Below, one piece after another: positions 8,001 through 63,744 of a stretch of DNA of 64,000 nt. The DNA comes from Macrostomum lignano (lineage: Eukaryota), in contig NIVC01001013.1 of NCBI GenBank assembly GCA_002269645.1, positions 247,142-311,141 on the forward strand, in the 5' to 3' direction. Both the position numbers and the translations under genes were made by a program. The notes beneath the pieces are model-generated. The model was not told the DNA's origin and ran no database searches. It saw only the letters and a list, made by a program, of their open reading frames with translations. Numbering within the stretch: the stretch's first letter is position 1; each line of letters begins with the position of its first letter.

Positions 8001-8755
8001 TGGTACGCCGGCTGGCGGGACCAGCTGCCACCTGCGTGTCTGGACCTGCCTGGGGTGCAGCACCAGCTGGGTCAGGTCTGTGCACCCGATTTTCGCCTAC
8101 CCGCTCTGCATCGTTATACTTTCTCTGCCTGTTCTACCCTCACTTCCTCTTTCCTAACCTTTCTCATCTCTCTTCTCCCCTCATCTCTCTTCTCCTCTCA
8201 TCTCTCTTCTCCCCTCATCTCTCTTCTCCCCTCACCTCTCTTCTCCTCTCATCTCTCTTCTCCCCTCATCTCTCTTCTCCTCTCATCTCTCTTTTCTCAT
8301 CTCTCCTCTTCCATCCTGCTTTCTCACCTCCCTCTCCTCTATTTTAATATATTTCTACTCTAATTATTTAATTCACCATCCCGCAGGCCCTTCGCCTGAT
8401 GGACGCCGCCTTCTCCGGCCAGGAACCGGCTGCCGTTGTAGCCGCCGGCGCCGCTGCCGCTGCCGCCGCCGCGGCCACCGCTTCCAGCTCTTCCGTAGCG
8501 CCGCAGGCTCAGCCAGCCACTGTAGTGAACTATAATCACGGCCTGCTGGGCGCCAGGGACCTTCTAGAACGCCGGGCCCAGGAGCACGGCATCGTGTTCG
8601 CCCCCACCGGCCGCCGGCATCACGGCAAGCAGGTGTTCAATTTTGGTCGGCTACAAATTTGCGTTGAACGCGGCGTAATTTACTGGCTGACTGAGGGCCA
8701 ATGGCGCCCAGTGTCCCTTGACGATGTTATGAATAGGGCCACCATGCGGCAGTGA
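5083..8755 (+). CDS. TFIP11: Tuftelin-interacting protein 11 / Ntr1-Spp382-like G-patch spliceosome disassembly factor, 4 exons: 5083-5940, 6417-7241, 7662-8075, 8387-8755 (~821 aa)
   Basis: G-patch ([38 protein letters not shown]). The conserved KVK|VIDMTG motif is split by intron 1. GCFC-type region ([19 protein letters not shown]) and C-terminal [31 protein letters not shown]. All three GT-AG introns join in phase 0. Confidence 0.92.
6087..6185. repeat. 31-bp tandem repeat x3 in TFIP11 intron 1
   Basis: Unit TTATAGTTACCCTCTCCTACAGTCCTTCAGG, with degenerate copies continuing to ~6340. Confidence 0.85.
7258..7578. repeat. 21-bp minisatellite (~15 copies) in TFIP11 intron 2
   Basis: Unit CCATTG(G/T)GA(T/C)CTGATGCTTAT. 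Confidence 0.92.
8160..8340. repeat. CT-rich low-complexity repeat in TFIP11 intron 3
   Basis: Recurring CTCATCTCTCTTCTCC modules. Confidence 0.8.
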
Positions 8756-14893: not shown

Positions 14894-15360
14894 CTTGATA
14901 ATAATCTAAGTTGATTGAAATGCATCAAATGTAAGATAATATAGGCCTAGTAATATTTTTTTTAAATTAATTAATATAGAAATAATAAATTTTTACTTGT
15001 ATATTATAATGTTTTGATAGGTTACAAATAATATTTAGCAAAGAAGGATAGTAAGGTTGATAGAAGTAATAAATTTTCTTAGCTCCCTTTATAATTCTTT
15101 TAACCAAAGTAGAAAAAGTTATTTATCATTTTGTCTATGGCCAATGTTATCCCTTTCTTATGAACAACTTTGCTTATAGCCTAGAAAGCTATTTAATAGA
15201 ATAAATATTCTCTAGAATTGAATAGAGAATATTTATCTTATTATAGTGGTTTATTGTTAAATTGACTATACCAATTTTCTATTGCATGAACCTGCAGTCC
15301 AGCCCCTAGAGTAGCATCACCCCATTGATAGCTGAAGCAGACAATCCTACTGACCTTGCT

Positions 15361-17370
15361 ATGTCATCCAGCACTGGACACCGCTCTGGCAAGCTGGCAG
15401 CTGCAAAGAGCGAGAAGGACCTACTCCAGGACGTGCTGGGCATGCTGCTAAGAGACGAGGACAATAAGTACTGCGCCGACTGCGATGCTAAAAGTCCCCG
15501 CTGGGCCAGCTGGAACATTGGCGTATTCCTCTGCATCAGATGCGCCGGCATCCACAGGAAGCTGGGCGTGCACATCTCGCGAGTGAAATCTGTCAACTTG
15601 GACTCCTGGACAGCCGAACAGGTGGCTGGGGTGGCCGCTATTGGTAACTCGCTAGCCAGAGCCGCCTACGAGGCCAACGTGCCGGATGGATTCCGTCGGC
15701 CGCAGACGGACGCCACGCTTGAGCAGTTCATCAAGGCTAAGTATGAGGAGAAGCGCTACTTAGCCAGGGACTGGGTGCTGCCTAAACCCGATCCAGCTGC
15801 TGTGTACGATCTGCTCAAGACCAACACTGCTCAGCGACGAGCTGCCGCCGCTGCTAACTCTGCCGCCGCTGACGGCGTGTCGCCGAAGCTGCCGGCGCCC
15901 GCGCCCGCGCCAGCCAGGCGCTCTGCTGGCAACACCACCGCGGCAGTGAAGCCTCCGCCGCAGGCTGCGTCTCAATCAAAGCCTGAGCCACCGCCCCCAG
16001 AGCAGCAGCCGGCAGCTCCTTCAGCAGTGCCGCAGCAGCCGCCGCCAGATCTGCTTGGCGGTCTGGCCGATGACGGATTTGGCGACTTCTCTAGCGGCGG
16101 CGGCGGTGGCGGAGTCGTCAGCTCGCACGCCAACGATTTGGCATTCTTAAGCGAGGGCAGCGCCACGACCGCCACTGCTGCCGACCTGTTTGCCAGCGAT
16201 TCTTCTAATTCTGCCAACACCGCCGCTGCTCCAAAGAAATCTATGAAAGATTCTATCATGGCTTTGTATGGTCAGCAGAATGCCGCTGCTGCTGCTGCTG
16301 CTTCTAGTGGAGGCGGCGGATTTCTAGCTCACAATCAGCAGCAGCAACACTTTGGCGGGATGCAATACTCGATGAGTACTCCTCAACTAGCTTCTGTAGC
16401 CAATTCAACTGGCTACCAGCCTATGCCGCAGCAGCAACAGCAGCAGCAGTATCAGCAACAATATCCATTTCTGCAGCAGCAACATCAACCTCAACAGCAG
16501 CAGCAGCAGCAGTTCTCGGCTCTGTACAGTCAAACTGCTGGCGCTCTCTACTCAACAGGTGGGCAGTTTGGTCCGCCGCAATTTGGCGGCGTGCCGACAC
16601 CGTCTTCTCAGCAACAGCAGCAGCAGCAGCAGCACTATGGATTTCAGCCACCAGGCTATGTCAATAATCAGTCTGCTTATTTGCTACAAGTAAGTGTTGC
16701 TTAATATTTTTTATTTGGTTTCCTCTATACTAATTTTTAGCACTTTATTGTAGGATAGATTATAGATCTTATATACACTAGATAGGCCACTGGCCACTCC
16801 CCATTCAGACAATGAATAGAAAATGACACCCAATAATGACTCGGGGACAAACAATGTTCGCTTGCACTACTGAAAACTAATCGTCAGTAGTCTATGGACA
16901 TAGACGAAAAAAATATATTTCATCGCAATACTTAAGTATAAGATCCATGTCTATGGTATATACTATAAATGAAGTTCTCTGTGGCCTTGAGACTTCAAAT
17001 TTGGGTTTTAACTTCGAATGCCCCATTCCACGGCTTGGGTGTCTGCCATTGCAACTGCTTTTTTCAACAATGAAATTTTCAAAGCCCATTTGAACTTTCT
17101 TTGCCCTTTTACTTGCTCTGTCAGCGGCCCGCCATGTCCACAATAATTCAGTAACTTTAGCTAATAATGTATAATAATAATAATAGTATTAGTACTATTA
17201 ACCGTTTGCGGCAATTCCCACAGATACAGAGCCAGATGGCCGGATTAAACTTCAAAGGTGCCGCCAATTCTGCTGGCTTTCCGCAACAGCAGCAGCAGCA
17301 GCAGCAACAGCCGCAGCAATACGCTGCTCAACAGCAGTCTGCTTTTGCTGCTGGCGACTTTTGGAACTAG
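15361..17370 (+). CDS. SMAP1: Stromal membrane-associated protein (SMAP1/2-type ArfGAP), 2 exons: 15361-16689, 17224-17370 (~491 aa)
   Basis: ArfGAP zinc finger CADC-x16-CIRC with [10 protein letters not shown] and [23 protein letters not shown]-like [13 protein letters not shown] motif and Q-rich tail. CAA|GTAAGT donor at 16690 and cccacag acceptor at 17223 join in phase 0 to IQSQMAG...FWN*. Confidence 0.88.
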
Positions 17371-17699: not shown

Positions 17700-17845
17700 A
17701 TAGTAGTAATAATAATATTAATAATAACAATAATTGATTACACCTGCCCAAGTGGCAGATGTGCAACCGACAGCTCAGCCGCAGCGATTGCGCGGCGCAT
17801 CTGAAGGCTGCGTACGGCTGTTCGGTCCAAGGACTGGGGGCAGGG
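17700..17845 (-). mobile_element. 5'-truncated inverted copy of the same SINE 3' end
   Basis: 17731-17840 is the reverse complement of 18091-18183 (CAGATGTGCAACCGACAGCTCAGCCGCA...CTGCGTACGGCTGTTC.GTCCAAGGACTGGGGG) with a ~22-nt indel. It runs into a (TTA)n-like tail on the minus strand. Confidence 0.65.
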
Positions 17846-17910: not shown

Positions 17911-18185
17911 GGGTTTTAGCCTAGTGGTTACTCCCACGACTCACGACTTGAAGGTCGGGGTTCGACTCCCAATCCTAATCGGAACGATTTGTGTCCTTGA
18001 GCAAAGACACTTAACTCTGCATTGCTTCAGTTCACCCAGCTGTAAAATGGGTGCCAGCATTAGCTGGGGTAATTGAGGGTGTGTGGTGACCCCCCCCCAG
18101 TCCTTGGACTGAACAGCCGTACGCAGCATGCGGCTGAGCTGTCGGTTGCACATCTGGCCGTTAGAGCAGGTGTAGTCAATTATAT
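17911..18185 (+). mobile_element. tRNA-derived SINE with CORE-like central domain
   Basis: A-box-like TAGCCTAGTGG and B-box GGTTCGACTCC. These are followed by GTGTCCTTGAGCAAAGACACTTAACT...CAGCTGTAAAATGGG, which resembles the MIR/CORE domain (GTGACCTTGGGCAAGTCACTTAAC...CTGTAAAATGGG). AT-rich 3' end. Confidence 0.7.
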
Positions 18186-19311
18186 TAAACTATAAAGTGG
18201 ATACAATGAATTGCTAAACTATTCAAGGTAAAGGAAAATTGAATAGTTCCTCGTAATACGCTACTTGGTATTTTCTCGGCAGTGGATAATTTTATAACAC
18301 CTTAATAATTGCTTGCTCATTAATTACGCAAAACAGTATGCACTGATTCCAGTTAGTAATTTACAAAAATTCATTAATATTCATTGATATGATTGTTCAG
18401 ACAAATTATAGCAAAATTTGACCGTGTTAAAATTCTGGCAAATTTAAATGCTACATCAGAACTGCCTGTTCGGTATTCGATTCGATCTTCACAGCTCTAT
18501 CCAGTTGTATTTCGCATGCAAGCTATGATATAACTGTTCTAAGTTTTATTTGTTGATTAGCCCTTTTATTCGTTTTGTTCCTCGTCAGAAATGTATTCGA
18601 TTGGATTAATGCATTCAAAAATTGCATAATCGCTTTTTTGACAATTAAATTTTAATTGGTGTCTGTTCGCTTGTCCTTATTAATTTTTTTCTTCTATTAT
18701 TTATTAATCTATGCTACAATTTTCGCAACAAAGTGTGCTTAAAAAGTTGATAAGCGCAGAGTTTTTTCCGAGCGCATATATTTTCAATTGGCAGGTCCCT
18801 CCCTCGCTACTAACTGTTTTGTTTTGAGTAGTCTAATATGAATGTAAATTTTGATGATTATAAAAAAGTTTGCGCGTATTTTTTTAATAAATTAACTACA
18901 GACGTGTCCTGACCGTGTTTTTAGTTTTGTTAAATTTGTTGATGTTGTCCCAATGCTGGGGGGGCTAGAAATATTGATGACGGGGTCTGGATAAAATCAA
19001 CCTTTATTTTATGTGTAGCTGCAATAATTTGCTTGTCTATTTATTTAATAGGACTTGCCATTTATAAATGTTGTTATTGAAGACTGTTCTTCGAGTACCC
19101 CTGTCTCATCAGCCCCCGTGTCTAAATAACAACTTAAAGACCAGATTAAGCTTATTCTTTAGGATATTTAATTGTCTTGCAAATCAGTGTAATCAGATAC
19201 TAGCAAAATAACGGTTGTTGTCTTGTGCTTTTATTTATTTATATCACCAAAATATTTGACTTTGTCATCACTAGCACTGGTCGCTGGTCATTTTGAGTCC
19301 GTCATGGTCAC

Positions 19312-23390: not shown

Positions 23391-24099
23391 AAGACTCTCT
23401 CTAACTTTAATTTAAACTATTCGAAATTATTCTGAATTTCAAAGACTCAGAAAAAGTCTTCAAGCACAACTTGCAGTTGCTAAGCCGAATGGCGCCGTAT
23501 TTGCGGAATTTCAATCCACTCAAGTGGAGCCCTGCGTCCGATAAGATTTATTTCTTTGCCAGAAAATTTCACGCATCCGATTTCTCAAGCATGCAACGCA
23601 GATTTCAATCCTTTCTTGGCTGAGAAAATTCTGTCAAAGAACCGACTGGCCAAGGGAAGATAAGGGCACCTGTCATCTGGCCATCTTCGCTGGGATTTCG
23701 ACTGTGGGTGCATGATCAAAAGCTTCTGGCCCCCTTTTCCCTTACCCACCTCCTCATCCGAATTTCCCCATTCTCTCGCAATGGGAGGCAATAAAAAATT
23801 GCTGGGATCTGTTGCGATCAGCAGTTCCATATGCCCAGGCTTAATTTGATACCGATCTTGAGCTGGCCTCTCTCGCCGCACGACCTTCTGTCAGAACCGG
23901 CCGCCAGTCAAACTCAGTGAGCGAGTGAGAAAGTCGCCAACTCAGAAATCGAATTATTCGAACAACAGGGAGTCACGTCCTGTCTGCCTCTCGATCCCTA
24001 ACTTTTGTTTAAGAAAACTTTCATCGAGAATTTCATTTCTCTATTTTACCTGTTGTGATTTATGAGCCAAGGTTTATCTGTAGCCATCTCCATTAATAC

Positions 24100-25125
24100 T
24101 GCAGTTTTGGCGCCGCTGTCTCTTCATTTCAGTCCTTCAGTTTTGGCGCCGCTGTCTTTTCATTTCAGTCCTTCAGTTTTGGCGCCGCTGTCTTTTCATT
24201 TCAGTCCTTCAGTTTTGGCGCCGCTGTCTCTTCATTTCAGTCCTTCAGTTTTGGCGCCGCTGTCTTTTCATTTCAGTCCTTCAGTTTTGGCGCCGCTGTC
24301 TCTTCATTTCAGTCATTCAGTTTTGGCGCCGCTGTCTCTTCATTTCAGTCCTTCAGTTTTGGCGCCTCTGTCTGTTCATTTCAGTCATTCAGTTTTGGCG
24401 CCTCTGTCTCTTCATTTCAGTCCTTCAGTTTTGGCGCCTCTGTCTCTTCATTTCAGTCCTTCAGTTTTGGCGCCTCTGTCTTTTCATTTCAGTCCTTCAG
24501 TTTTGGCGCCTCTGTCTTTTCATTTCAGTCCTTCAGTTTTGGCGCCTCTGTCTCTTCATTTCAGTCCTTCAGTTTTGGCGCCTCTGTCTTTTCATTTCAG
24601 TCCTTCAGTTTTGGCGCCTCTGTCTCTTCATTTCAGTCCTTCAGTTTTGGCGCCTCTGTCTCTTCATTTCAGTCCTTCAGTTTTGGCGCCTCTGTCTCTT
24701 CATTTCAGTCCTTCAGTTTTGGCGCCTCTGTCTCTTCATTTCAGTCCTTCAGTTTTGGCGCCTCCGTCTCTTCATTTCAGTCCTTCAGTTTTGGCGCCTC
24801 TGTCTGTTCATTTCAGTCCTTCAGTTTTGGCGCCGCTGTCTCTTCATTTCAGTCCTGCAGTTTTGGCGCCGCTGTCTCTTCATTTCAGTCCTGCAGATTT
24901 GGCGCCGCTGTCTCTTCATTTCAGTCCTGCAGTTTTGGCGCCGCTGTCTCTTCATTTCAGTCCTGCAGATTTGGCGCCGCTGTCTCTTCATTTCAGTCCT
25001 TCAGTTTTGGCGCCTCTGTCTTTTCATTTCAGTCCTTCAGTTTTGGCGCCTCTGTCTTTTCATTTCAGTCCTTCAGTTTTGGCACCGCTGTCTCTTCATT
25101 TCAGTCCTTCAGTTTTGGCGCCGCT
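24100..25125. repeat. 36-bp minisatellite (~28 copies)
   Basis: Unit CAGTTTTGGCGCC(G/T)CTGTCTCTTCATTTCAGTCCTT. Confidence 0.93.
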
Positions 25126-25909
25126 GCCGCCTCAAAGAAATATCAAAGCCAAGAATGCAGAGCTGTCAGGTGTACCAGCCTCATTCGGGGTGTGGCTCGG
25201 AGGCGAGGCACAGAAGAAGGAAAATAAATCGAATCGAAATCCCAGTCTGAGCTCCCCTCCCCTCCTCTCTCTCTGTGTCTTCCTCGGCTTCGGCTTGCGC
25301 GAAATTGCCTCATCACAGTTTCGGGGATTTAATCCCCGGCTAAGCTCCCTCGCGCGCTGTTCCCCCCCCATTTTCTAAAACATCTCCCGCGCCCGTGTGA
25401 GGGATTAGTGGGGCCGCAGCTTCCGAAAGTTTCTCGTCGATAATTTTGGGCCCCACCCGCCCAGCGGGGGGCCTCGGGTCCTCCGCTAGGCATGGCGGAC
25501 AACAATTTCTTTTTGCGCCAAAGGAGACGGAGATTAACTGCCCTGCCAGCCTCATCAGCAGCTTCTGGGCGGAAATGAAAGTGGCGAAAAGGGCGTCGGG
25601 GATATTGGGAAATGAATTTCTCTGTGTTTTTCGAATTAATTCCCCCCCGGCCGGCCTCCGCTCTCTTTTCTCGTTCCGTCGGTGGTCCAAAGCGAACAGA
25701 AATATGGTGGGGCGGCTCCTTTGTCAGCAAACAGATTAGCTGATCCTCTCATTCTAGATCTTCCCAAATCCTTTCGAATCTGAGCACGCCAACCCCCCAG
25801 CCTCCGTCGTCAAGGCCGGTGACGCTGCTGAATTGGGCAATTAGCACCTAGCAATATGGTTAAAAATTTTCAATGATTTGTTTGTCTAAAATTTATATGC
25901 ATGTTACTC

Positions 25910-26345: not shown

Positions 26346-27109
26346 AATGACGCATGTCAGACAGAAATTCGCGGTTTTGTGTCAAAGAGTAAGTCATGTA
26401 TAGTAAAATAGTACAGAGTAAAAGAATAAAGTGTAAAAAGAAAATCTTGCATAAGTGCAAAATTATATTAAGGTGAACAGCTGCCTATTTCAAATACACA
26501 ACCATCAGTCTGAGTCAGTGTAATCTTCATCTTCAACTAGTCTCATTCCAAGATTTCATGAAATCAGTTCCAAACAGGCATACTGAACCGTTACGCATAG
26601 ATCAGGCAAAATTTTCAGAAAAAGTTCGCAGATAGCCTAACGAGCTTCTGCGGGGTTTCTTTCGTGTGAAAGGAAGCTCACCGATCTTCTAGAAGAGACA
26701 GACATTTTAGCTTATTAAGTTAATTAAAAATAGATCATCTATATATGATATGCATTTCAGGTAGAAGTGACATAGGTTTTGCCTCTGCTCATCCTCATTT
26801 TCGAGTCTCATCTCCCACCAGCTCTTGAGCTCTGCTCCTCAGAAGCCTTTTTTGCAAGGCCGACCGCGTGCAGAGGAGATTGCCTTAGCCACGTGGCACG
26901 CGAGTTCTTGCAAGAAGAAAACGAATGAATATGTCGGACACCTGCGCAAAAGGGAAGCTGGATGATGGAGAAGGGAGTATGGAGCTGATCTGCGCTAAAA
27001 ATGGAAGCTACTAGTGTTGAGCGATTCCGTGATGGGGATTATTCCAGACTGGACTCGTTCTAGGATGCTGAAGCATTTTCCTCAGATTTGAATTCCTTCA
27101 ACTCCCAGA

Positions 27110-27930
27110 TCTTCAGATCCTCCCAGATCCTCCCAGATCCTCTCAGATCCTCTCTTATCCCCCCAGATCCTCAGATCCTCCCAGATCCTCCCAGATCCTC
27201 TTAAATCCTTCCAGATCCTCTCAGATCCTCTCTTATCCCCCCAGATCCTCAGATCCTCAGATCCTCCCAGATCCTCCCAGATCCTCCCAGATCCTCCCAG
27301 ATCCTCCCAGATCCTCCCAGATCCTCCCAGATCCTCCCAGATCCTCTCAGATCCTCCCAGATCCTCCCAGATCCTCCCAGATCCTCCCAGATCCTCCCAG
27401 ATCCTCCCAGATCCTCTCAGATCCTCTTAAATCCTTCCAGATCCTCTCAGATCCTCTCTTATCCCCCCAGATCCTCAGATCCTCCAGATCCTCCCAGATC
27501 CTCCCAGATCCTCCCAGATCCTCCAGATCCTCCCAGATTCTCCCAGATCCTCCCAGATCCTCCCAGATCCTCCCAGATCCTCCCAGATCCTCCCAGATCC
27601 TCCCAGATCCTCCCAGATCCTCCCAGATCCTCCCAGATCCTCCCAGATCCTCCCAGATCCTCTCAGATCCTCTCAGATCCTCCCAGATCCTCCCAGATCC
27701 TCTCAGATCCTCCCAGATCCTCCCAGATCCTCCCAGATCCTCCCAGATCCTCCCAGATCCTCTCAGATCCTCCCAGATCCTCCCAGATCCTCTCAGATCC
27801 TCTCAGATCCTTCCAGATCCTCTCAGATCCTTCCAGATCCTCTCAGATCCTTCCAGATCCTCCCAGATCCTTCCAGATCCTCCCAGATTCTCCCAGATCC
27901 TCCCAGATCCTCCCAGATCCTTCCAGCTCC
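27110..27930. repeat. 10-bp minisatellite
   Basis: Unit CAGATCCTC(C/T). Confidence 0.93.
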
Positions 27931-29806
27931 TCCCAGCTCCTCCCAGTTTTTTCACTTGTCTAACTCAGTAACCAGGGCAAAAAGAAATTGGCTGCAGCAG
28001 TTGAGCAGGCAGGCAGGTTTTGAGCAGCTGCACAGGGGTGGCCTCGCCATCTCCAGCAGCCAATCGGTTCGCTTGGACTCGCCGGATTGGCCGACCTCCG
28101 CGACAGAAACAGTTTCTGCGCCAAGCTCCAACCCGGCGCTGCAGATTTCTTGAGCTTATCTTCCGCCTGCTTCTGCTAGCGCCTTATTCCAGCCTCCCTG
28201 CCCCATCGTGTCCAGTCCAAACACAGCTGCCCGATTCGCTTCGTCCCGCAGTCGCCAACCCGCTCGCCAAATCCCTTCTTAATCCCCTCCAGCGGGACTC
28301 CCATCCTTGCCCGGCTCCTTCTAGAAGAAGATCTCCAGCTTTGAGGCTTCGAAGGCCGCCTTTTCTATTATTAAAATCTCAAGTGTCAAACGATTCAGGT
28401 GAGTATCGATTTAACAGCATTCTCCCATTGCTCCCATTGTCTGGTCATTTTGCTCAACCAAATTGGGTTGCTATTTTTGTTGCTTCCCACAGATTTTTTG
28501 CCTCATTTGTTTCGTAAAATTTCTAATTATAAAGTTTTCCTCCTTATTTATTAATAACTTTTCCACCGCTTTTCCTGTGCATCCGCCCCTTACCGCCCAG
28601 TTTTACGACAAATCCGCCCTATTTCCGCCCCCTTCGACTCCGGGTCCCGCCTTCATCTCCATAGCTTCTGTTTTCCGTCATTCCGTTTTAAAACGGATTT
28701 TAACAAATTTTTAGCAAACCGCCGTTCATTTTTATCCCGAAATTGCGTGCGCAAAAGAAAAACCTATTTAGACCCTGTGCGGCTATACGGGAGAGGGCAG
28801 GCCATTGGGGATGAAGCTGCGCCGAGCTGTCGCTGCTTACGCCAGCGAGTTTTTGTCTCCAGTCTCTGCACCCTGGGGGGCTGCAGGCGCTGCTCCCTTC
28901 CTCTATTTCTCTCTCTCGACCCACCCCACCCGACCCCTCCCGGGCCATCAGAGTGACATGTTTTCAGTCCTTTAATCCTCTCGCTAATCCCTTCCATTCG
29001 AATGGCAGGGCCCCCGGGAAAGAGGCGGGAGACACGGGGCAAAAGCAGGGCGAGAGAGGCAGCTGATCGAAAAAAATGGCTTGAGCCCATCCTCCGCTTG
29101 TCTCTCCCCTGACAATTGCAGGGAAAATATGAATAGAAGACAAACTCGAGCTCAGGTGGGGCAACAGGGGGGGGGGTGGTGGCTCCGATGGGGCTCCGAA
29201 ACTCGGCTTCCCATTTCGCTAAAACTTCCCCCCCTCAGCATCTCCTCTGACAGCCATCGGCTGTCCCGAAAGTTCCCCAACTCTTGCTGACCCGCCGCCC
29301 CCAGACGAATATCCCTAATCCCCTACTAAATCCATCGCGATGGCGACGACTCGACTTACGATGCGGCAACTCCGTTCAGCGGCCCCGCGTGGTGCACCTG
29401 CAGACAGGCCGCCTGCTTTTAGTCTCAGCCTCTCCTCTTTCCAGCTGGGGATTAGAGATCCCCCAGCCCGTGCTGATGAAGGTGACGGGGGAGTGGGGTT
29501 CAAGCGACAGTTTCACCCAACGCCACTCGCCCTAAAACTCCCATATACGCTGTCTGCGTCTCTCTACCTGTCTATCCGAAATCCGAGGCCGACCCATTAA
29601 CTCGGCGCACGCTCGCCCCACTCGCCGCGGTGTCAGTGGGACCCATCGTCCTGAGCTCAAGTTTCCTCGTGCCTCAGGCCTCTCTGGCTCTCTATTTAGT
29701 ATTTTATCGACACAAGAACTGCAGCTGCCGGTGTTCTTCATCGTTCTTCAAATCGGGAACTGAATACCAACTATAGGTTTGGTGATTTCATTCCAGCTGC
29801 AGAGCG

Positions 29807-31038
29807 ATGGACTGGAGCGGCTATCACCACGGCTCGCAGTTCAATTATAACCCGCATCCGGGAGGCGCCAGCGGACTTGGCAAGCAGGGCTTCGCCATGA
29901 TGGGCAACCTGGGCGTCGGGATCGCCACACCGCCGGCTCATCACGAGATGCTCCATCATCCGGCCCTGACCGCCTACTCCAGTAAGACTGAACTCTGTCA
30001 CACTACTCTGTCTCGTATTCATGAGACGAACTCGAGTTTCTCTAAGTTTTCATTTTCCAATTTGCAGCCCCTGTGCGCAAGCAGCGGCGCGAGAGGACCA
30101 CCTTCACCAGGGCGCAGCTGCAGATCCTGGAGGAGCTGTTCGGCAAGACCAAGTACCCGGACATCTTCATGCGCGAGGAGGTGGCGCTGCGGATCAACCT
30201 GCCGGAGTCGCGGGTGCAGGTCTGGTTCAAGAACCGCCGGGCCAAGCAGCGCCAGCAGCAGAAGCAGAAGGAGGCCGGCGAGAAGGCCGCCCACTGCGGC
30301 GTGTCGGCCGCCTCCGCCGGACAGCCGGTCGGACACGCCGGACACGCCGGACACGCTGGACACGCCGGACACGCCGGACACGCCGGACACGGAGCGAAGG
30401 CCGTCTCCGTCTCGGCTTCCGCCGCGCCGCTGGCCGGAGGCTCCGCACTCGCCGCCGCCACCGCTGCCGCTGCGGCCGCTGCCGCCAACATCGGCGGCAG
30501 AGGCGGCGGCGCCGGCATCGGCGGCGGAGGCGGCGGCGCCGGCATCGACATGGCCGGCTGCCTCCACGACGCCGGCGGTGGCGCTGTCAAGTGCGAGGAC
30601 GTCGACTCGAGCAGCCCGTCGCCCGCCAAGACGCTCAGCCTGCCCGGCTCGGCCGAGGCCTCCAAGCGCAGCCCCGCCGTCTCCGCCAACGGCCACGCCG
30701 CCGCCGCGGCCGCCGCTGCCGCGCACTTCCTCACCGACTCTACCGGACACTCCGGCGCCGCCGGCTGGGGCGCCTCGGCCGCCGGACGCCTCGCCGGACC
30801 CAACAGCCCGACTGACGGCGGCTCCGCCTACGCCACCTGCGTTCAGCAGCAGCACCGCAGCGCTGCCGCAGCCGCAGCCGCCGCGGCCGCTGCCGCTGCC
30901 TACCACAACCAGACCTACGGACAGTACAGCGCTACAGGCTACCCTCCGTATGACTACCTGCGACCTGCTGCCTACCCGCAGCAGCCGCCAGACTATGACT
31001 ATCAGGGCTGGTCATCGCGCAAGCTGCAGCTGCTGTGA
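29807..31038 (+). CDS. otx: Orthodenticle/Otx K50 homeobox protein, copy A, 2 coding exons: 29807-29981, 30068-31038 (~381 aa)
   Basis: Homeodomain [57 protein letters not shown] (K50, Otx diagnostic) and an Otx-tail-like end [15 protein letters not shown]. The 86-nt phase-1 intron GTAAGA...TTTGCAG (29982-30067) joins exon 1 in frame. Confidence 0.93.
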
Positions 31039-31709
31039 ACTCTTTGACACTTGATTGATATCGGATTAATGATTTATTGTTCGGTCATTGTTGGGACTTT
31101 GCGTCAAAGTGCAAACCGTTTTTGTGTCGGGTTTTCATCCGGGATTTCACTATTAAGCTTTTCTATATATTCTCCTTATGCGTTTGAGTCCCCTAGCGAT
31201 GAGCAATATGTACAGCCATAGGAATGCGTTCTAAATAAGTGTAGTTATTATTGTTTAAATTTTGTTTAAATGCTCTCCTTGTAGACAGTAATTATTATAG
31301 CTTCTGGCACGAATTTCTGCGATATTACTTACTTTACTCACACCTGTCACTCTGGTCTCTCTGTTTGTTAAAATTAGAAATTTAAACATGTTTTTAAGCA
31401 TCTGTCTCTGCAGATCGTCCAGAACTGTCAATGTTTAGTAAAGGCCTGTAGCTATGCACTACTTTGTCGCGTCTCTAAATTTAAATCATTCTGCATAAAG
31501 ACTGAATCTATAGGCAACTGGTTAACAATAAAGCTGATTTTTATAAGTGCGAAATGCAAGTATATATACATATATATTTATATGAAATATATATTGAGCA
31601 ATGAAAACTAATACTGTATGTTTAAGAATAACTATATAAGACGGATGTATTTCAGTTGTAGTTCATTTTTTTGTTAAAAGTATAGCGTGAGAAAATTCTA
31701 GTCTTAGAA

Positions 31710-32500
31710 CAGCGCCCCAAACAGCCCCCAAACAGCCCTCAAACAGCCCCCAAACAGCCCCCAAATAAACCCCAAACAGCCCCTCAACAGCCCCCAAACA
31801 GCCCCCAGAAAGACCCCCAAACAGCCCCCAAACAGACCTCCAACAGCCCCCCAAACAACCCCTGTAAACAGCCCCCCCAAACAACCTCAAACAGCTCTCA
31901 AACAGCCCCAAACAACCTCAAACAGCTCTCAAACAGCCCCAAACAACCTCAAACAGCTCTCAAACAGCCCCAAACAACCTCAAACAGCTCTCAAACAGCC
32001 CCAAACAACCTCAAACAGCTCTCAAACAGCCCCAAACAACCTCAAACAGCTCTCAAACAGCCCCAAACAACCTCAAACAGCTCTCAAACAGCCCCAAACA
32101 ACCTCAAACAGCTCTCAAACAGCCACAAACAGCTCTCAAACAGCCCCAAACAACTTCAAACAGCTCTCAAACAGCCCCCCAAACAACCTCAAACAGCTCT
32201 CAAACAGCCACAAACAGCTCTCAAACAGCCCCAAACAACCTCAAACAGCTCTCAAACGGCCCCCCAAACAACCTCAAACAGCTCTCAAACAGCCCCAAAA
32301 AACCTCAAACAGCTCTCAAACAGCCCCAAACAACCTCAAACAGCTCTCAAACAGCCCCAAACAACCTCAAACAGCTCTCAAACAGCCTCAAACAACCTCA
32401 AACAGCTCTCAAACAGCCCCAAACAACCTCAAACAGCTCTCAAACAGCCCCAAACAACCTCAAACAGCTCTCAAACAGCCTCAAACAACCTCCAACAGCC
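31710..32500. repeat. AAACAGCCCC-derived 10/11-bp repeat forming a 31-bp unit, in the spacer between the two Otx 3' ends
   Basis: Unit AAACAACCTC-AAACAGCTCTC-AAACAGCCCC. Confidence 0.9.
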
Positions 32501-32914
32501 AGTATGCCAATCAATCCAAGCAACGCAGCAAACTGAAACGAAGCGACAAAAAGCACATTAAATATTGTTAACAGACGAGCAAATATATTATTGCGGCAGA
32601 CTAAGGATCAGAGCACGAACACAGGCGGTAAGCTATTCTTCAATTTGCATACGCTACATTTTAGTGAGAAAAGTTGCAATACTATGCAAAATTCAGAGAA
32701 GGAAATTACAAAAACAAATATATAGGGAGACTGAAGAGGCTTACATGTAACAGCCAAGCATTTTTCTTCTGCATTGGGGCCGGAATTTCAATGATCGGTA
32801 AGAAAACGGTGGCGGAGGCATGCAGCATACAAATCCAGATAAAGCTTATTAATTAATACACAGAGACTGTTTAGGCCGGACTATATATGGAATATTCCTG
32901 CTAAAGTCAGTGAG

Positions 32915-35900
32915 CTACAGCAGCTGCAGCTTGCGCGATGACCAGCCCTGATAGTCATAGTCTGGCGGCTGCTGCGGGTAGGCAGCAGGTCGCAGGTAGT
33001 CATACGGAGGGTAGCCTGTAGCGCTGTACTGTCCGTAGGTCTGGTTGTGGTAGGCAGCGGCAGCGGCCGCGGCGGCTGCGGCTGCGGCAGCGCTGCGGTG
33101 CTGCTGCTGAACGCAGGTGGCGTAGGCGGAGCCGCCGTCAGTCGGGCTGTTGGGTCCGGCGAGGCGTCCGGCGGCCGAGGCGCCCCAGCCGGCGGCGCCG
33201 GAGTGTCCGGTAGAGTCGGTGAGGAAGTGCGCGGCAGCGGCGGCCGCGGCGGCGGCGTGGCCGTTGGCGGAGACGGCGGGGCTGCGCTTGGAGGCCTCGG
33301 CCGAGCCGGGCAGGCTGAGCGTCTTGGCGGGCGACGGGCTGCTCGAGTCGACGTCCTCGCACTTGACAGCGCCACCGCCGGCGTCGTGGAGGCAGCCGGC
33401 CATGTCGATGCCGGCGCCGCCGCCTCCGCCGCCGATGCCGGCGCCGCCGCCTCCGCCGCCGATGTTGGCGGCAGCGGCCGCAGCGGCAGCGGTGGCGGCG
33501 GCGAGTGCGGAGCCTCCGGCCAGCGGCGCGGCGGAAGCCGAGACGGAGACGGCCTTCGCTCCGTGTCCGGCGTGTCCGGCGTGTCCGGCGTGTCCAGCGT
33601 GTCCGGCGTGTCCGGCGTGTCCGACCGGCTGTCCGGCGGAGGCGGCCGACACGCCGCAGTGGGCGGCCTTCTCGCCGGCCTCCTTCTGCTTCTGCTGCTG
33701 GCGCTGCTTGGCCCGGCGGTTCTTGAACCAGACCTGCACCCGCGACTCCGGCAGGTTGATCCGCAGCGCCACCTCCTCGCGCATGAAGATGTCCGGGTAC
33801 TTGGTCTTTCCGAACAGCTCCTCCAGGATCTGCAGCTGCGCCCTGGTGAAGGTGGTCCTCTCGCGCCGCTGCTTGCGCACAGGGGCTGCAAAGTTAATCC
33901 GATGAGGTTGCGTTCGGGCTTGAGAAAATGGCGCTAATGGGTTGAGTTCAGTTGTGTTACACGCACTGCCTTTCGTGTCTGAGCAGCTGCCCCAGGTGGG
34001 CCAACAAGCAGCGGGGAGCCGCAGCCGCCCCCTCTCGAATTCTCTCGGCTCGGCGAGCCCGGCGGGTGGGGGGTGCGCCGTTTTGTTTTAATCTGCAGCA
34101 TTCAAAGCAGACCTTCAATCCGCTGGGATTATTCCCTATACAGACAGGCGCGCCCCTTTGTAGCCAAATAAAATTCTTTCGCATCCACGCGAGAGGCTGG
34201 GGAGTCGCGTGTCGGGCGCTCTGCAAGGTCGGGTTGGCCTCCCCCCTATAGAGCAGTCAAGTATGCTCATCAATCTGAGCATTCCATTGAATGCGGCACT
34301 CAGGTGGTCAGTGATGGATTCGGCCTGATGCAGCCAGCGCCTGTGCTCAAGGACCGCGAGCATTTCTTTGTGTTGACGAAATCTTTCATTTTCTCCTATA
34401 GCCGCCTCGAGGCGGATTTTCTGTGAGTAAAAAGTAATAGTTGCATCGAGTGGGGGGATTACAGGTAGGAGGGGATACGGACTGGATTTTCGGTTTAATC
34501 AAGCTGAGTATCGAGAAAGATGGCTGAGGGCGGAGGCGGTAAGGTAATCAAGTTAATAGCAGCAAATAAATGCCCCGAAGCAATTATTTCAGTTAGAAGA
34601 TTGATCGCTTTCCTTTCGAGGTGTGTTGACAACATTCAGCCTCAACCTTGACCTGTTCTGGAAACTTACTAGATACTTCTTGAAGTGTTTTCTAATTCAC
34701 AGGCCTCTGAATCCGCTACCCCGCTCCTTCAGTGAGCTGCTCAATCCGCTACCCCTGCTCCTTCAGTGAGCTGCTCAATCCGCTACCCCCGCTTCTTCAG
34801 TGAGCTGCTCAATCCGCTACCCCCCGCTTCTTCAGTGAGCTGCTCAATCCGCTACCCCCGCTCCTTCAGTGAGCTGCTCAATCCGCTACCCCCGCTCCTT
34901 CAGTGAGCTGCTCAATCCGCTACCCCCCGCTTCTTCAGTGAGCTGCTCAATCTGCTACCTCCGCTCCTTCAGTGAGCTGCTCAATCCGCTACCCCCGCTC
35001 CTTCAGTGAGCTGCTCAATCCGCTACCTCCGCTCCTTCAGTGAGCTGCTCAATCCGCTACCCCCGCTCCTTCAGTGAGCTGCTCAATCCGCTACCCCCGC
35101 TCCTTCAGTGAGCTGCTCAATCCGCTACCCCCCGCTTCTTCAGTGAGCTGCTCAATCTGCTACCCCCGCTCCTTCAGTGAGCTGCTCAATCCGCTACCTC
35201 CGCTCCTTCAGTGAGCTGCTCAATCCGCTACCCCCCGCTTCTTCAGTGAGCTGCTCAATCTGCTACCTCCGCTCCTTCAGTGAGCTGCTCAATCTGCTAC
35301 CTCCGCTCCTTCAGTGAGCTGCTCAATCCGCTACCCCCGCTTCTTCAGTGAGCTGCTCAAGCCTCTACCCCCGCTCCTTCAGTGAGCTGCTCAAGCCTCT
35401 ACCCCGCTCCTTCAGTGAGCTGCTCAAGCCTCTACCCCCGCTCCTTCAGTGAGCTGCTCAATCCGCTACCCCCGCTCCTTCAGTGAGCTGCTCAATCCTC
35501 TACCCCCGCTCCTTCAGTGAGCTGCTCAATCCGCTACCTCCGCTCCTTCAGTGAGCTGCTCAATCCGCTACCTCCGCTCCTTCAGTGAGCTGCTCAATCC
35601 GCTACCTCCGCTCCTTCAGTGAGCTGCTCAATCCGCCACACCCGCTCCTTCAGTGAGCTGCTCAATCCGCTACCTCCGCTCCTTCAGTGAGCTGCTCAAT
35701 CCGCTACCTCCGCTCCTTCAGTGAGCTGCTCAATCCGCTACCTCCGCTCCTTCAACTGGCCGCACCAACCGCCAAAACTCTCGAATCTATATTAGGCTCC
35801 TATTTCCCTTGTTTCAAACTCACTTGCATAGGCAGACAGTGCCGGATGGTGCTGCAGCATCTCGTGATGCGCTTGGGCCGCCGCCGCCGCCGCCGCCGCT

Positions 35901-36190
35901 GTCTGCAGAGGCATTCCGTCGCCTCTACCGCCGCCGCCGGCGCTGCCGCCAGAGCCGCAGGTGGCTCCGGTGGAAAATCCGCCGATAGCTGAGCCGCCGC
36001 CGAGACCGACAGTCAAGTCGCTGTCGTTGCCGCAGCCGAATATGCCGCCTCCTACGCTGCTCGACATGTCGGGCATCGGGTAGCCAAACTGAGTCTGGCC
36101 AACCAAACTATGATGGTGCTGGTGGTGGTGATGATGAAGCTGAGCCTGTTGCTGATGAGTCTGAGTCTGGTAGGCTGTGTTCCAGTCCAT
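32915..36190 (-). CDS. otx: Orthodenticle/Otx K50 homeobox protein, copy B, 2 coding exons: 36190-35824, 33885-32915 (~445 aa)
   Basis: Same homeodomain exon as copy A in reverse orientation. Exon 1 (MDWNTAY...[16 protein letters not shown]) is homologous to copy A exon 1. The phase-1 intron GTGAGT...TTTGCAG (35823-33886) joins in frame. Confidence 0.92.
34705..35752. repeat. ~34-bp minisatellite (~30 copies) in the Otx B intron
   Basis: Unit AATCCGCTACCCCCGCTCCTTCAGTGAGCTGCTC. Confidence 0.93.
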
Positions 36191-36229
36191 TTCCTGCAGA
36201 AAGGTTTAGGGAGCACGAATGATTTGCTG

Positions 36230-36442
36230 TCGCTATGCTGTTGCTATGCTGTTACTATGCTGTTGCTATACTGCTGCTATGCTGCTGCTATGCTGTTACT
36301 ATGCTGATGCTATGCTGCTGCTATGCTGCTGCTATGCTGTTGCTATGCTGTTGCTATGCTGTAACTATGCTGTAACTATGCTGTAACTATGCTGTAACTA
36401 TGCTGTAACTATGCTGTAACTATGCTGTTGCTATGCTGTTGC
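36230..36442. repeat. 11-bp repeat just upstream of the Otx B ATG
   Basis: Unit TATGCTG(TTGC/CTGC/TAAC). Confidence 0.85.
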
Positions 36443-37180
36443 TAAGCCGTTGTTCATGCTCAGTATAGCAACTTCCGATTCATTTGAGCAAACTGCTTCG
36501 AAGAAAGAAAATGGCATGGCTTCGCCCTTCTCCTCTGCTAAAGAAGATCCCAATCCTGCATGCTTGCTAATCCCCTCCCGGCTCTTCTTAATCCCCTTTC
36601 TCCTACCCAAATAATTCACCCCGTCTCCCGATACAAGTTGATGAAAAATGCGTGCCTTGTCTGTCTCCCCAAGCCTCGCCTTTGCCTCGCCCTCGCCCTT
36701 GTCGTTTCCCCCCTGCTTGCCCGGTTCCAGAGCTCGCCGCCTCCTCGCCCATCGCCATTTTCGCTCATACACCATGCATTTTAGCTGCTGTTATATGCCG
36801 ACAATTCCCCATCGAGCTCGAGACCCGAGGCATGAGCTGGGGGGAATGAGACTTCCCTCTGGGAGTTGCTGGCTATCGAGTATCAGTCGAGTTGATAAAG
36901 ATGAAAAACCTGCATGGCGAGAGGCGCTGGGCATGGAAACTTTCTGGGGGAGACGAGAAATTTCGAAATTTTCTGAAATTTCCAAACTCTGATACCTACG
37001 CTTGTAAAAGAGATTGCAATGTCTTAGTGCAGCTGTGCTCACGAGGACTCACCGACTGTTGAATTTGGCTATCATTTTATCGCAGCCGTTTAACTTAGAC
37101 TTAAAGCAAGACTCGCCTCTGTTCTGAATGCTGAGCAACTATAGCTCCATCTCTCCCTGCATCCCCAGCTTCTTCGGGTA

Positions 37181-38479: not shown

Positions 38480-39410
38480 AGCGCCACCAAAACGACGCCT
38501 CCAAAACGGCGCCTCAAAAAAGGCGCCCCAAAAAACGACGCCTCCAAAACGGCGCCTCAAAAAAGGCGCCCCAAAAAACGACACCTCCAAAACGGCGCCT
38601 CAAAAAAGGCGCCTCAAAAAAGGCGCCCCAAAAATGGTGATTCCAAAACGGCGTCTCAAAAAAGGCGACCCAAAAATGGCGCCTCCAAAACGGCGTCCCA
38701 GAACGGCGCCTCCAAAACGGAGCCCCAAAAACGACGCCTCCAAAACGGCGCCTTAAAAATGGCGTCTCCGAACGGCGCCCCCAAAACGGTGCCTCTAAAA
38801 CGGCGCCTCCAAAACGGCGCCCCAAAAATGGCGCCTCTGAAACGGCGCCCCCAAAACGACGACTCTAAAACGGCGCCGCTAGAACGGCACTTCCAAAACG
38901 GCGCCTCCAAAACGGCGCCCCAGAACAGCGCCTCCAAGACGGCGACTCCAAAATGGCGCCTCTAAAACGGCGCCTCCAAAACGGCGCCTCCAAAACGGAG
39001 CCCCAAAAACGACGCCTCCAAAACGGCGCCTCCAAAACGGCGCCCTAAAAACCACGTCTCTGAAATGGCACCCCAGAACAGCACCCCCAAAACGGCGCCC
39101 CAAAACGAAGCCCCCAAAACGGCGCCCCAAGATGGCGCCTCTAAAACGGCGCATCAAAACGAAGCCCCCAAAACCTCAGAACTGCACCTCTAGAACGGCG
39201 CCCCAAAACGGCACCTCTAAAACGGCGCCCCAAAACGGCGCCCCAAAACGGCGCCCCAAAACGGCGCCCCCAAAACCTCAGAACTGCACCTCTAGAACGG
39301 CGCCCCAAAACGGCACCTCTAAAACGGCGCCCCAAAACGGCGCCCCAAAACGGCGCCCCAAAACGGCGCCCCCAAAACCTCAGAACTGCACCTCTAGAAC
39401 GGCGCCCTCG
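38480..39410. repeat. Degenerate AAAACGGCGCC(C/T)C minisatellite
   Basis: Many copies of AAAACGGCGCC with local higher-order duplications. Confidence 0.9.
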
Positions 39411-41614: not shown

Positions 41615-43030
41615 GATCTGGAGAGATTTAGGGGAGGTCTGAGGGTGAGACTGATCTGGGGAGATTTAGGGGAGGTCTGAGGGTGAGACTGATCTGGAGA
41701 GATTTAGGGGAGGTCTGAGGGTGAGACTGATCTGGAGAGATTTAGGGGAGGTCTGAGGGTGAGATTGATCTGGAGAGATTTAGGGGAGGTCTGAGGGTGA
41801 GATTGATCTGGAGAGATAGGAGAGGTCTGAGGGTGAGATTGATCTGGAGAGATAGGAGAGGTCTGAGGGTGAGATTGATCTGGAGAGACTCAGGAGAAGG
41901 GTGAGATTGATCTGGAGAGATAGGAGAGGTCTGAGGGTGAGATTGATCTGGAGAGACTCAGGAGAAGGGTGAGATTGATCTGGAGAGATAGGAGAGGTCT
42001 GAGGGTGAGATTGATCTGGAGAGACTCGGGAGAAGGGTGAGATTGATCCTGGAGAGACTCAGGAGAAGGGGGAGATTGATCACGGAGAGACTCAGGAGAA
42101 GGGGGAGATTGATCATGGAGAGACTCAGGAGAAGGGGAAGATTGATCACGGAGAGACTCGGGAGAAGGAGGAGATTTATCCTGGAGAGACTCGGGAGAAG
42201 GAGGAGATTAATCTGGAGAGACTCAGGAGAAGGGTGAGATTGATCATGGAGAGACTCAGGAGAAGGGTGAGATTGATCTGGAGAGACTCAGGAGAAGGGT
42301 GAGATTGATCCTGGAGAGACTCAGGAGAAGGGTGAGATTGATCTGGAGAGACTCAGGAGAAGGGTGAGATTGATCTGGAGAGACTCAGGAGAAGGGTGAG
42401 ATTGATCTGGAGAGACTCAGGAGAAGGGGGAGATTGATCCTGGAGAGACTCAGGAGAAGGGTGAGATTGATCATGGAGAGACTCAGGAGAAGGGTGAGAT
42501 TGATCCTGGAGAGACTCAGGAGAAGGGTGAGATTGATCATGGAGAGACTCAGGAGAAGGGTGAGATTGATCTGGAGAGACTCAGGAGAAGGGTGAGATTG
42601 ATCTGGAGAGACTCAGGAGAAGGGTGAGATTGATCTGGAGAGACTCAGGAGAAGGGTGAGATTGATCCTGGAGAGACTCAGGAGAAGGGTGAGATTGATC
42701 TGGAGAGACTCAGGAGAAGGGTGAGATTGATCTGGAGAGACTCAGGAGAAGGGTGAGATTGATCTGGAGAGACTCAGGAGAAGGGTGAGATTGATCCTGG
42801 AGAGACTCAGGAGAAGGGTGAGATTGATCTGGAGAGACTCAGGAGAAGGGTGAGATTGATCTGGAGAGACTCAGGAGAAGGGGGAGATTGATCTGGAGAG
42901 ACTCAGGAGAAGGGTGAGATTGATCATGGAGAGACTCAGGAGAAGGGTGAGATTGATCTGGAGAGACTCAGGAGAAGGGTGAGATTGATCTGGAGAGACT
43001 CAGGAGAAGGGTGAGATTGATCTGGAGAGA
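41615..43030. repeat. 38-bp to 32-bp GA-rich minisatellite
   Basis: GAGACTGATCTGGAGAGATTTAGGGGAGGTCTGAGGGT grading into GAGATTGATCTGGAGAGACTCAGGAGAAGGGT. Confidence 0.92.
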
Positions 43031-43669
43031 CTCGAGTAGTGAAATCTACCTTAAATTTATCATCGACAATGCATGCAAAGGGGAACGCTCTATAGGTCTG
43101 TCAGCGGATACCTTGCGAAATAGATCTGATGCATATCTGCAAATCATGAGCTCCCTAAACCTTGGGAGAGCTCTCCCCATGCTGTCCACCCACCTTCAGC
43201 CGCGGCGTGACGAGATGCTCCTCCCACTTGTCCCACAGAGATTTATAACGACTGCCGGCCTGACCAAATGCTTGATTGCGATATGAAACTCCGGCCAACG
43301 CACAGAAGGGACAATTAGCCTTATGCCGTTTGGGACATAATGACGGCCAAGATTGTAATGGGGGGATGGGGACGGGCGGAAAGAGGATTAAAAATTCCCA
43401 CAATCCCCTGATGGGACATGCGGCGGACTGTTAGGAACTGATGACAGGTCTGTCTGATTCTCTGCAGTGTTTGAGATTTGAAAATCTAAATATACTGATA
43501 AGCCAACGGCCTAATTACTGTTTGAACTTGAGTTGCGCTGGGCCACAACAGCCTTGGCATAGCGGCATCGAGATATTGAATATTGCACCTATGGCCCTCG
43601 CTTTCACAATCTCAGTCTCTGTATGCACACCATTCTCAACTCCCCCTCTGTGCATCTCACCTCTCTATC

Positions 43670-48680: not shown

Positions 48681-49604
48681 TCAGGCCCTGATTTTTAGTG
48701 TTGCGCTAGATTCTATCAGGCCATTAGGTTAAAAAGCAATCAGAATTATTGGGTAGCAATGCCGATTTCCACTCCAGACACTTCCCAATCTCGAACTCCA
48801 TGGCTCGCAGCTCTCAGTCTCCTCTGGGCGCCTCATCGTTTCGTTTTCTCTTCTCGTCCCTACCCCATCAGAGAGCCGTCTTCTTTTACAGCAGCAGCAG
48901 CAGCAGCAGCAGAAGCGTTCTCTCCCTGTCCGTCTGTCCGTCTGTCTGCCTGTCTGCCCGAATTGTGACACGAGATCAGGTGAAACTTGAAGCTGCGCGG
49001 AACAAAAAACTCAGAGGCAAGTCGAATCACGCTGCTGCTGCTGCTGCTGCTGCTGCTGCGAGGGGGATAATTAAGCAAAGTTTTGTGGAAGTTTGGAGCT
49101 AAAATTCCCGGATAAAAATGTAGATAAAAATTATTGCCCAGCGCTTAATTAACACATCGTACGAAAGTTCGATTCGAGTGTATCCAAGCAGCTCTCCTGG
49201 ACCCAATTAGAGCATACAGCTCAGAGAATTGTTCTTCTCAGACAGCAGTGTTTGCTAATCGGATCATCGGAGGCGAAGTTTGCCATTCGCCCCTTCGGCT
49301 TTTTCACAGGAAGAAATCCCAGGTGATTGCGCGAGTTTGTCTTGAGGCGGCGCAGAGCACACAGTGCGCAGGCTGTCAACACGCTCTGCTTCCAGGAGAA
49401 CTGTAGTCTATAGAGTTTGTTTCTTTCTCTCTCTACTCTCTTCTTTTAGAAGACACGAGGCGAGGTGCAAAAGTGTATAGTAGCGTGAGTTAAATAATCC
49501 CCAGTGTCATGCAAGGTGTCACACTCACTGACAGGCCGACAGACCGTTCTTGGTGAATATGCAGTAGATTACACAGTCCACTCAATACACTCAAATGTGG
49601 ATGT

Positions 49605-52700
<3,096 letters not shown>

Positions 52701-63580: not shown

Positions 63581-63744
63581 CTGGGGAGAGTGAGGCAGGT
63601 ATAAATTGCCTTATTATCAGCATTTGGGTGGCTGGGTGGCCGGCTGTCTTGCGCAACTACACAGTGCACTAGATAGAATCAATACAAGTGACTCAGCAGG
63701 GTTAGGGTCCGACCATTACAAGTATCGTACTGTCAATCAAAAAC

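Follow-up and report, generated by a model that had tools for sequence, protein, structure and literature searches.

An almost identical homeobox exon in two inverted Otx paralogs of Macrostomum lignano: probable recent interlocus gene conversion

How do two neighbouring genes come to share one exon almost base for base, when their first exons, introns and flanks have so little in common? This question is raised by two convergent Otx-class homeobox genes, here called copies A and B, in the flatworm Macrostomum lignano. The genes occupy positions 29807-36190 of the stretch of DNA that was analysed, hereafter the window, which comprises 64,000 nucleotides (nt) of contig NIVC01001013.1 (assembly GCA_002269645.1; positions 247,142 to 311,141 of the forward strand). 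All coordinates below are those of the window unless another contig is named. We regard recent interlocus gene conversion between two old, inverted Otx paralogs as the best explanation, and as a highly probable one. The mechanism of recombination, its recurrence, and the expression of both genes under different regulation are what we infer from this pattern.

Two convergent Otx genes and their shared exon

A repeat finder returned one inverted repeat at the locus, with arms of 976 nt at 30061-31036 (arm A, forward strand) and 32917-33892 (arm B, reverse strand) lying 1880 nt apart. Base-by-base comparison showed 974 of the 976 positions to be the same (99.8%), leaving two mismatches only. The first is silent, with C at 30144 in copy A (GGC) and A at 33809 in copy B (GGA). 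The second distinguishes Arg in copy A (A at 30499; AGA) from Gly in copy B (G at 33454; GGA). The shared tract begins with TTTGCAG, 7 nt 5' of exon 2 at the end of the intron, and finishes at the T of the stop codon, which is TGA in copy A and TAG in copy B. Beyond the arms, identity falls at once to the random level on both sides (300 nt of flank compared per side). A search at word size 7 revealed no similarity between the upstream regions, introns or 3' flanks of the two copies, and exon 1 yielded just one 14-nt and one 10-nt match. The arms are separated by a unique spacer (31037-32916) that holds both 3' flanks and, by tandem-repeat scan, a minisatellite with a 31-nt period (31714-32500).

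These comparisons bear out much of what the initial annotation of this DNA had described: a 971-nt exon 2 in each copy with differences at 30144 and 30499 only, identity that stops within 7 nt of the acceptor and at the stop codon (TGA/TAG), first exons of 175 and 367 nt, introns of 86 and 1938 nt, and no visible similarity between introns or 3' untranslated regions (UTRs). It had also called the conversion exon-precise. The limits of identity on which that term was based are as described, but they place only an upper bound on the tract, since bases at its edges are conserved in any case. A third M. lignano Otx gene (paralog C, introduced below) also ends its intron in GCAG, and TTGCAG occurs in an Otx-like contig from another organism (L002). 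Likewise, the last 13 coding nt of copies A and B, CTGCAGCTGCTGT, are identical in paralog C. Given this conservation at the ends of the arms, the visible limits would mark the outer bound of the converted tract rather than measured breakpoints. In homology-dependent repair, heteroduplex or new synthesis may reach the edge of a homologous block but never extend past it. Limits of identity that are set by where homology remains are consistent with repair of this kind.

Both genes could be modelled in full. Copy A is encoded on the forward strand at 29807-29981 and 30068-31038 (381 amino acids, aa) and copy B on the reverse strand at 36190-35824 and 33885-32915 (445 aa), neither with internal stops. 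Each has a GT..AG intron in phase 1 at the same codon. That of copy A spans 29982-30067 (86 nt; 40% GC), and that of copy B, placed by the splice model, spans 33886-35823 on the reverse strand (1938 nt), more than half of it occupied by a minisatellite with a 34-nt period (34710-35754; approximately 31 copies by tandem-repeat scan). The first coding exon of copy A (29797-29981, forward strand) contributes 175 nt of coding sequence from the ATG at 29807, with the acceptor CATTCCAG just 5' of it and the donor CCA/GTAAGA at its end. The first coding exon of copy B (35824-36190, reverse strand) contributes 367 nt from the ATG at 36190, with the acceptor TTTCTGCAG located 3 nt 5' of the ATG. A splice acceptor thus lies 3-10 nt 5' of the ATG in each gene. 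This shared arrangement, together with the matching intron position and phase and the intact models of both copies, favours duplication of a whole gene. Exon 2 follows at 30068-31038 in copy A (forward strand) and 32915-33885 in copy B (reverse strand). In translation, its 971 coding nt specify a homeodomain, an Ala/Gly-rich linker and a conserved C-terminal tail.

Additional support for the copy A model came from a 183-aa partial M. lignano model, P0121 (UniRef A0A1I8IW91), which was returned by a search with the N-terminus of copy B. P0121 mapped to the window at 100% in four blocks with proper splice sites (27971-28111, 28325-28396, 29795-29981 and 30068-30216), such that the junction between exons 1 and 2 of copy A is already present in it. 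The first two blocks define upstream non-coding exons of copy A on the forward strand. One lies at 27971-28111 (P0121 residues 1-47 at 100%, GT at 28112), its 5' end not defined, and the other lies at 28325-28398 (residues 48-71 at 100%), flanked by TTCTAG and GTGAGT. Being very GC-rich, exon 2 can be read without stops in several frames of either strand, giving open reading frames (ORFs) of 250-336 aa on the arms. A 415-aa ORF (29807-31054, forward strand) runs from the ATG of copy A through the intron into the wrong frame of exon 2. These extra ORFs across the arms are artefacts of composition that could mislead ORF-based gene callers.

By sequence, copies A and B are both assigned to the Otx class of K50 paired-like homeobox genes. 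Each contains a complete Pfam homeodomain (PF00046, positions 1-57 of 57) with E-values of 5e-21 for copy A and 1e-20 for copy B. Direct reading of the translation from QRRERTT onward places lysine at homeodomain position 50, as in bicoid/Otx-type specificity. The named proteins among the best 120 database matches were almost all Otx, ocelliless or Crx, at approximately 65-92% identity over an alignment that was essentially the homeodomain. An exhaustive search of representative proteins likewise returned Otx, ocelliless and Crx as nearest relatives. The C-terminus was judged by eye to be a possible variant of the SWKFQVL ending of other matches, an Otx tail of W-x-F-Q-V-L type. Neither copy matched the Pfam family TF_Otx (PF03529) at E<=0.1. 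PF03529 was also lacking from most protostome Otx proteins among the best 120 matches; it is a deuterostome-centred model and is not defining for Otx.

Tblastn identified exactly two Otx copies within the window. The third, paralog C (P0002; BOX15_Mlig008535g2, PAA62285.1), lies at 10001-12499 of contig NIVC01001954.1 (L001), with no second Otx gene within 10 kb on either side. P0002 was considered as an ortholog from a different species and rejected as such once the 100% match of P0121 identified the window itself as M. lignano; it is hence a third paralog. Its phase-1 intron is located at the position seen in copies A and B, its homeodomain is identical to theirs except for one flanking residue, and it ends in the same tail followed by TAA. 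Paralog C has a Gln-rich linker, for which no alignment with the Ala/Gly-rich linker (~200 aa) of copies A and B could be made. The annotated C-terminus of PAA62285.1 is frame-shifted; the conserved tail reappears in the other frame and is also present in the alternative model P0130. The shift suggests either an assembly indel or a mis-annotation.

A comparison sequence from another organism was found at 130-1132 of L002, a Logan contig from run DRR639838. It contains an Otx-like exon with the acceptor context TTGCAG followed by CCCCTGTGCGGAAGCAG. Its homeobox shows 85% DNA identity, it has an extra intron past the homeodomain, and its C-terminus differs. L002 was rejected for a cross-species test as too short and too diverged.

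Divergence, timing and base composition

The argument for conversion is carried by the contrast between the two coding exons. Using paralog C as the reference, we compared synonymous (pS) and nonsynonymous (pN) differences per site by Nei-Gojobori counts. Between copies A and B, exon 2 gave a pS of 0.004 (1 change in 254.5 sites) and a pN of 0.001. Exon 1 could be aligned only at the motif AHHEML(Q)HHPAL.AY, where pS was saturated, at about 0.67 (7 changes in 10.5 sites), and pN was 0.058. The synonymous contrast between exon 2 and this motif is approximately 150-fold (p about 1e-6 in an ad-hoc Fisher table). Against paralog C, the homeodomain of copy A or B gave a pS of 0.47-0.50 and a pN of 0.013. 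On these values the split between A and B appears to be at least as old as their split from C, and the pattern in exon 1 indicates probable purifying selection in both copies after an old duplication.

The linker reinforces this contrast. Within exon 2, the (GHA)7 tract, a 27-nt duplication and the poly-Ala runs have the same lengths in both copies. Selection cannot account for this identity, given a linker whose rapid evolution has left it beyond alignment with that of paralog C. Exon 1 behaves differently. Only MDW, a weak TQF.Y.P motif and AHHEML(Q)HHPAL.AY are common to copies A and B. Exon 1 of copy A is collinear with that of paralog C (38% identity over 65 aa), while exon 1 of copy B aligns to A over its last 15 aa only and to C over MDW..AY only. 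Exon 2 groups A with B against C, and exon 1 is too short and of too low complexity for a supported tree. Such disagreement between exons would match the incongruence expected under conversion. The initial annotation had read the locus as old inverted paralogs whose homeobox-plus-C-terminus exon was homogenised by conversion, a reading that the synonymous contrast, the identical linker and the diverged flanks all support. Its further idea of continual homogenisation would go beyond one genome, from which it follows only that the latest event was very recent. Its statement that exon 1 retains MDW and AHHEML(Q)HHPAL.AY with several synonymous changes also proved accurate, and the weak TQF.Y.P motif can be added.

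The two mismatches allow the last homogenisation to be placed in time. Paralog C has GGC at the codon containing 30144, which makes the GGA of copy B derived. For 30499, the adjacent unit of the internal 27-nt repeat reads GGA, which makes the AGA of copy A derived, at a CpG. Each copy would therefore have gained one private GC-to-AT change since the exons were last made alike. M. lignano is a neopolyploid whose S, L1 and L2 subgenomes have diverged by 1.4-2.4% (PMC10733133). Because exon 2 of copies A and B differs by 0.2%, below this range, the last conversion is probably younger than the divergence of the subgenomes.

Base composition offers a possible trace of earlier events. G or C occupied the third codon position (GC3) in 66/66 homeodomain codons of copy A, 65/66 of copy B, 56/66 of paralog C (A versus C, p=0.0014) and 57/66 of L002. 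GC3 was 277/322 (0.86) across exon 2 versus 130/180 (0.72) in the pooled first exons (p=2e-4), and ranged from 0.58 to 0.72 in six other ORFs of the window. Among homeodomain differences between A and C, 13 have the strong base in A and 1 has the weak base in A. This excess hints that conversion may have been recurrent and GC-biased. Midway through the homeobox, A and C show a cluster of near-identity that was considered as an older conversion tract and rejected as evidence, since the two-fold codons in which it is rich would be fixed by strong GC3 preference in any case; part of the cluster is identical in L002 as well.

The proposed history would begin with two old Otx-class paralogs in tail-to-tail orientation, with 1.9 kb between them. 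Both would possess separate 5' exons (one or more) and a separate first coding exon, followed by a phase-1 intron at the same codon and a single large exon for the homeodomain, the low-complexity linker and the conserved C-terminal tail. Very recently, non-allelic (interlocus) gene conversion between the inverted large exons would have overwritten one copy with the other, with one private GC-to-AT mutation arising in each copy since then. The tract would be limited to the large exon because only this stretch would still have the homology that strand invasion and annealing require; elsewhere, in introns, UTRs and most of exon 1, the sequence has diverged or been filled by minisatellites. The outcome would be two proteins that share their DNA-binding and C-terminal parts but differ at their N-termini.

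Alternative explanations

One alternative is a single recent partial inverted duplication, in which a non-homologous process such as fold-back template switching copied only exon 2 beside or into an older paralog. The arms differ at two sites only, and one genome cannot tell one event from many, both of which suit such an origin. However, both endpoints would then have to fall 0-7 nt from the limits of the exon and also leave the exon in phase with the homologous exon 1 already in place. If breakpoints fell at random across a 6-kb locus, the chance of this would be of order one in a million. The GC3 excess would also go unexplained. We therefore consider a partial duplication improbable.

We rate as equally improbable an artefact of assembly or polishing, in which consensus building or short-read polishing made truly more diverged copies of exon 2 alike. 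The genome gives some reason for this concern. The published Mlig_3_7 assembly contains many chimeric scaffolds, amounting to 36% by length (PMC10733133), and the neopolyploid genome itself comprises three subgenomes that have diverged by 1.4-2.4%. P0121 also ends 156 nt into arm A, at ...ESRV, which could signal a break there. This end coincides with the canonical intron position of the Otx/PRD homeobox (homeodomain positions 46/47), an intron that none of the three M. lignano Otx genes (A, B and C) possesses. At 30216-30220, CAG/GTCTGG mimics a donor exactly where P0121 stops. The coincidence with the canonical position points to a probable gene-prediction artefact rather than to a break in the contig.

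The structure of the locus also argues against an artefact. A fold-back chimera of long reads would be a palindrome lacking a spacer and with symmetrical flanks. This form of the explanation was excluded, as the arms are separated by 1880 nt (1.88 kb) of unique sequence and the outer flanks are unrelated save for the first exons, which are different and intact, homologous but diverged. It is also unlikely that over-polishing has masked real divergence. With exon 1 saturated, copies of exon 2 that had escaped conversion should differ by tens of percent and have low-complexity tracts of unequal length, which is beyond the reach of polishing, and two copy-specific differences persist.

Conversion through complementary DNA (cDNA), in which an mRNA from one copy was reverse-transcribed and then recombined with the other, would account for identity that follows the exon closely on its 5' side. 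Yet both introns have been kept and the tract includes 7 intronic nt. Moreover, the tract halts at the stop codon, whereas a cDNA would have carried it into the 3' UTR. We view this route as very unlikely. Purifying selection alone, without recombination, fits the homeodomain and C-terminal tail, which are conserved in paralog C, but it is effectively refuted by synonymous-site identity, as selection on protein cannot freeze approximately 254 synonymous sites, nor fix how long the (GHA)7 and poly-Ala tracts are, and paralog C shows no conservation of the linker whatever.

Recent interlocus conversion between old inverted paralogs is thus preferred, and several points weigh against it. The basis is one assembly of a genome that is neopolyploid and rich in repeats, from a species that is known to be difficult to assemble and whose Mlig_3_7 assembly has the chimeric scaffolds already described. 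The exon-1 side of the synonymous contrast covers 15 codons only. The homeodomain of paralog C is itself GC3-rich (0.85), such that the excess in copies A and B could partly be codon preference. With one genome at hand, recurrent conversion cannot be separated from a single recent event. Finally, transcript or protein support for copy B was absent from every database searched. Searches of libraries of 5.8 billion and 1.84 billion proteins with the C-terminal part of exon 2 or the N-terminus of copy B returned only homeodomain-level matches and P0121, and no exact match to four window ORFs or to P0121 was found in a contig index. The database search that listed the best 120 matches missed P0121, probably because low-complexity words crowded its candidates, and negatives from that search are unsafe.

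Two further ideas extend beyond recent conversion itself. According to the first, which we hold to be doubtful, the two copies have long persisted as a palindrome, and it would be repeated GC-biased conversion, not protein selection, that drove every third position of the homeodomain to G/C and turned the linker into Ala/Gly-rich low-complexity sequence, in contrast to the Gln-rich linker of the unconverted paralog C. If this were true, the three young subgenomes would amount to three natural replicates of GC-biased conversion. The second concerns transcription of the spacer. Within 31039-32914, copy A has an AATAAA at 31527, 488 nt past its stop codon, and copy B has neither AATAAA nor ATTAAA until 31078, a signal that adjoins the stop codon of copy A. 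The 3' UTRs of the two genes may accordingly overlap in antisense unless copy B uses a variant poly(A) signal. With the inverted 976-bp exons 1.9 kb apart and no canonical poly(A) signal for copy B ahead of 31078, transcripts that read through, or that converge and overlap, could form long double-stranded RNA and lead to small-RNA autoregulation of Otx dosage. This second idea is the more speculative of the two.

Surroundings, significance and known systems

Much of the non-coding DNA in the window is filled by minisatellites with periods of approximately 10-38 nt, in arrays of up to 3.1 kb. A tandem-repeat scan placed arrays at 24062-25378, 27102-27946, 31714-32500, 34710-35754, 36225-36452, 38481-39378, 41615-43033 and 49603-52693. 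One of them makes up most of the difference in intron size between copies A and B, and another lies directly 5' of the ATG of copy B. These arrays create many spurious long ORFs. A dispersed repeat of approximately 130-240 nt (81-90% identity) occurs at 17709-17840 (forward strand) and 17981-18193 (reverse strand), two inverted copies situated 12 kb upstream of copy A, with a further one at 3092-3335 of L001, upstream of paralog C. The match between L001 and the window at 17.7-18.2 kb was considered as a conserved non-coding element and rejected as a dispersed repeat within one genome, probably a fragment of a transposable element. An Rfam scan of the window gave no match.

The Otx pair is isolated from other genes. 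For approximately 12 kb on either side the DNA is repeat-rich and has no recognised coding ORF except the 5' exons of copy A. Neighbouring genes include a TFIP11-like splicing factor with TIP_N, G-patch and GCFC domains (5083-8090), an ArfGAP protein (15325-16704) and a weak RRM ORF (3492-4259), all on the forward strand, and an exon of a Ras-family GTPase on the reverse strand (63166-63669).

The locus is an unusually clean case of partial concerted evolution, with one exon of a developmental transcription factor locked and the N-termini, introns and flanking, presumably regulatory, DNA free to evolve. The pair separates the same DNA-binding module from its different contexts in a flatworm in which RNA interference is routine. 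Transgenesis has been established in M. lignano as well (PMC5730564). The locus is also a warning for annotation and phylogenetics: trees built on exon 2 would misdate the duplication, short reads would map to both copies, and copy B is unannotated. Its value is that of a case study, and possibly of a test bed for GC-biased conversion with three subgenome replicates; it introduces no new principle. Literature searches brought up no paper specific to duplicated Otx genes in Macrostomum or to M. lignano gene conversion.

Comparable homogenisation has been described in other animals. In the Drosophila Hsp70Aa/Ab and C. elegans hsp-16 pairs, close inverted copies are kept near-identical by intrachromosomal conversion, with identity decaying where homology ends. 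Whole genes are homogenised in these pairs, often with their promoters, whereas in the M. lignano Otx pair only the last exon is affected and the N-termini stay different.

Closer parallels are found among homeobox genes. Capitella teleta Dlxa and Dlxb, a case that the authors attribute to gene conversion (McDougall et al. 2011, PMC3199776), are likewise lophotrochozoan homeobox paralogs, inverted tail to tail and mostly diverged. Their homeobox is 98.4% identical at the nucleotide level, with identity reaching a few nt into the intron. The Capitella tracts measure 150 bp and 31 bp across an 18-kb spacer, compared with 976 nt and 1.9 kb in M. lignano, and show no GC difference, in contrast to the clear GC3 excess of the Otx pair.

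The mammalian TPRX1 and TPRX2 genes have undergone repeated interlocus conversion, mainly of the homeobox-containing part, such that conspecific pairs cluster in trees (Lewin et al. 2021, PMC8208926). They too are PRD-class paralogs in opposite orientation, derived from CRX/Otx. TPRX conversion is documented across multiple species, in tracts no longer than 492 bp, for genes that flank CRX. In comparison, the M. lignano case comes from one genome, involves a bona fide Otx pair, and has a longer, near-perfect tract. The phenomenon is therefore already known, and the M. lignano Otx pair is a longer and cleaner case of it, covering homeodomain, linker and tail.

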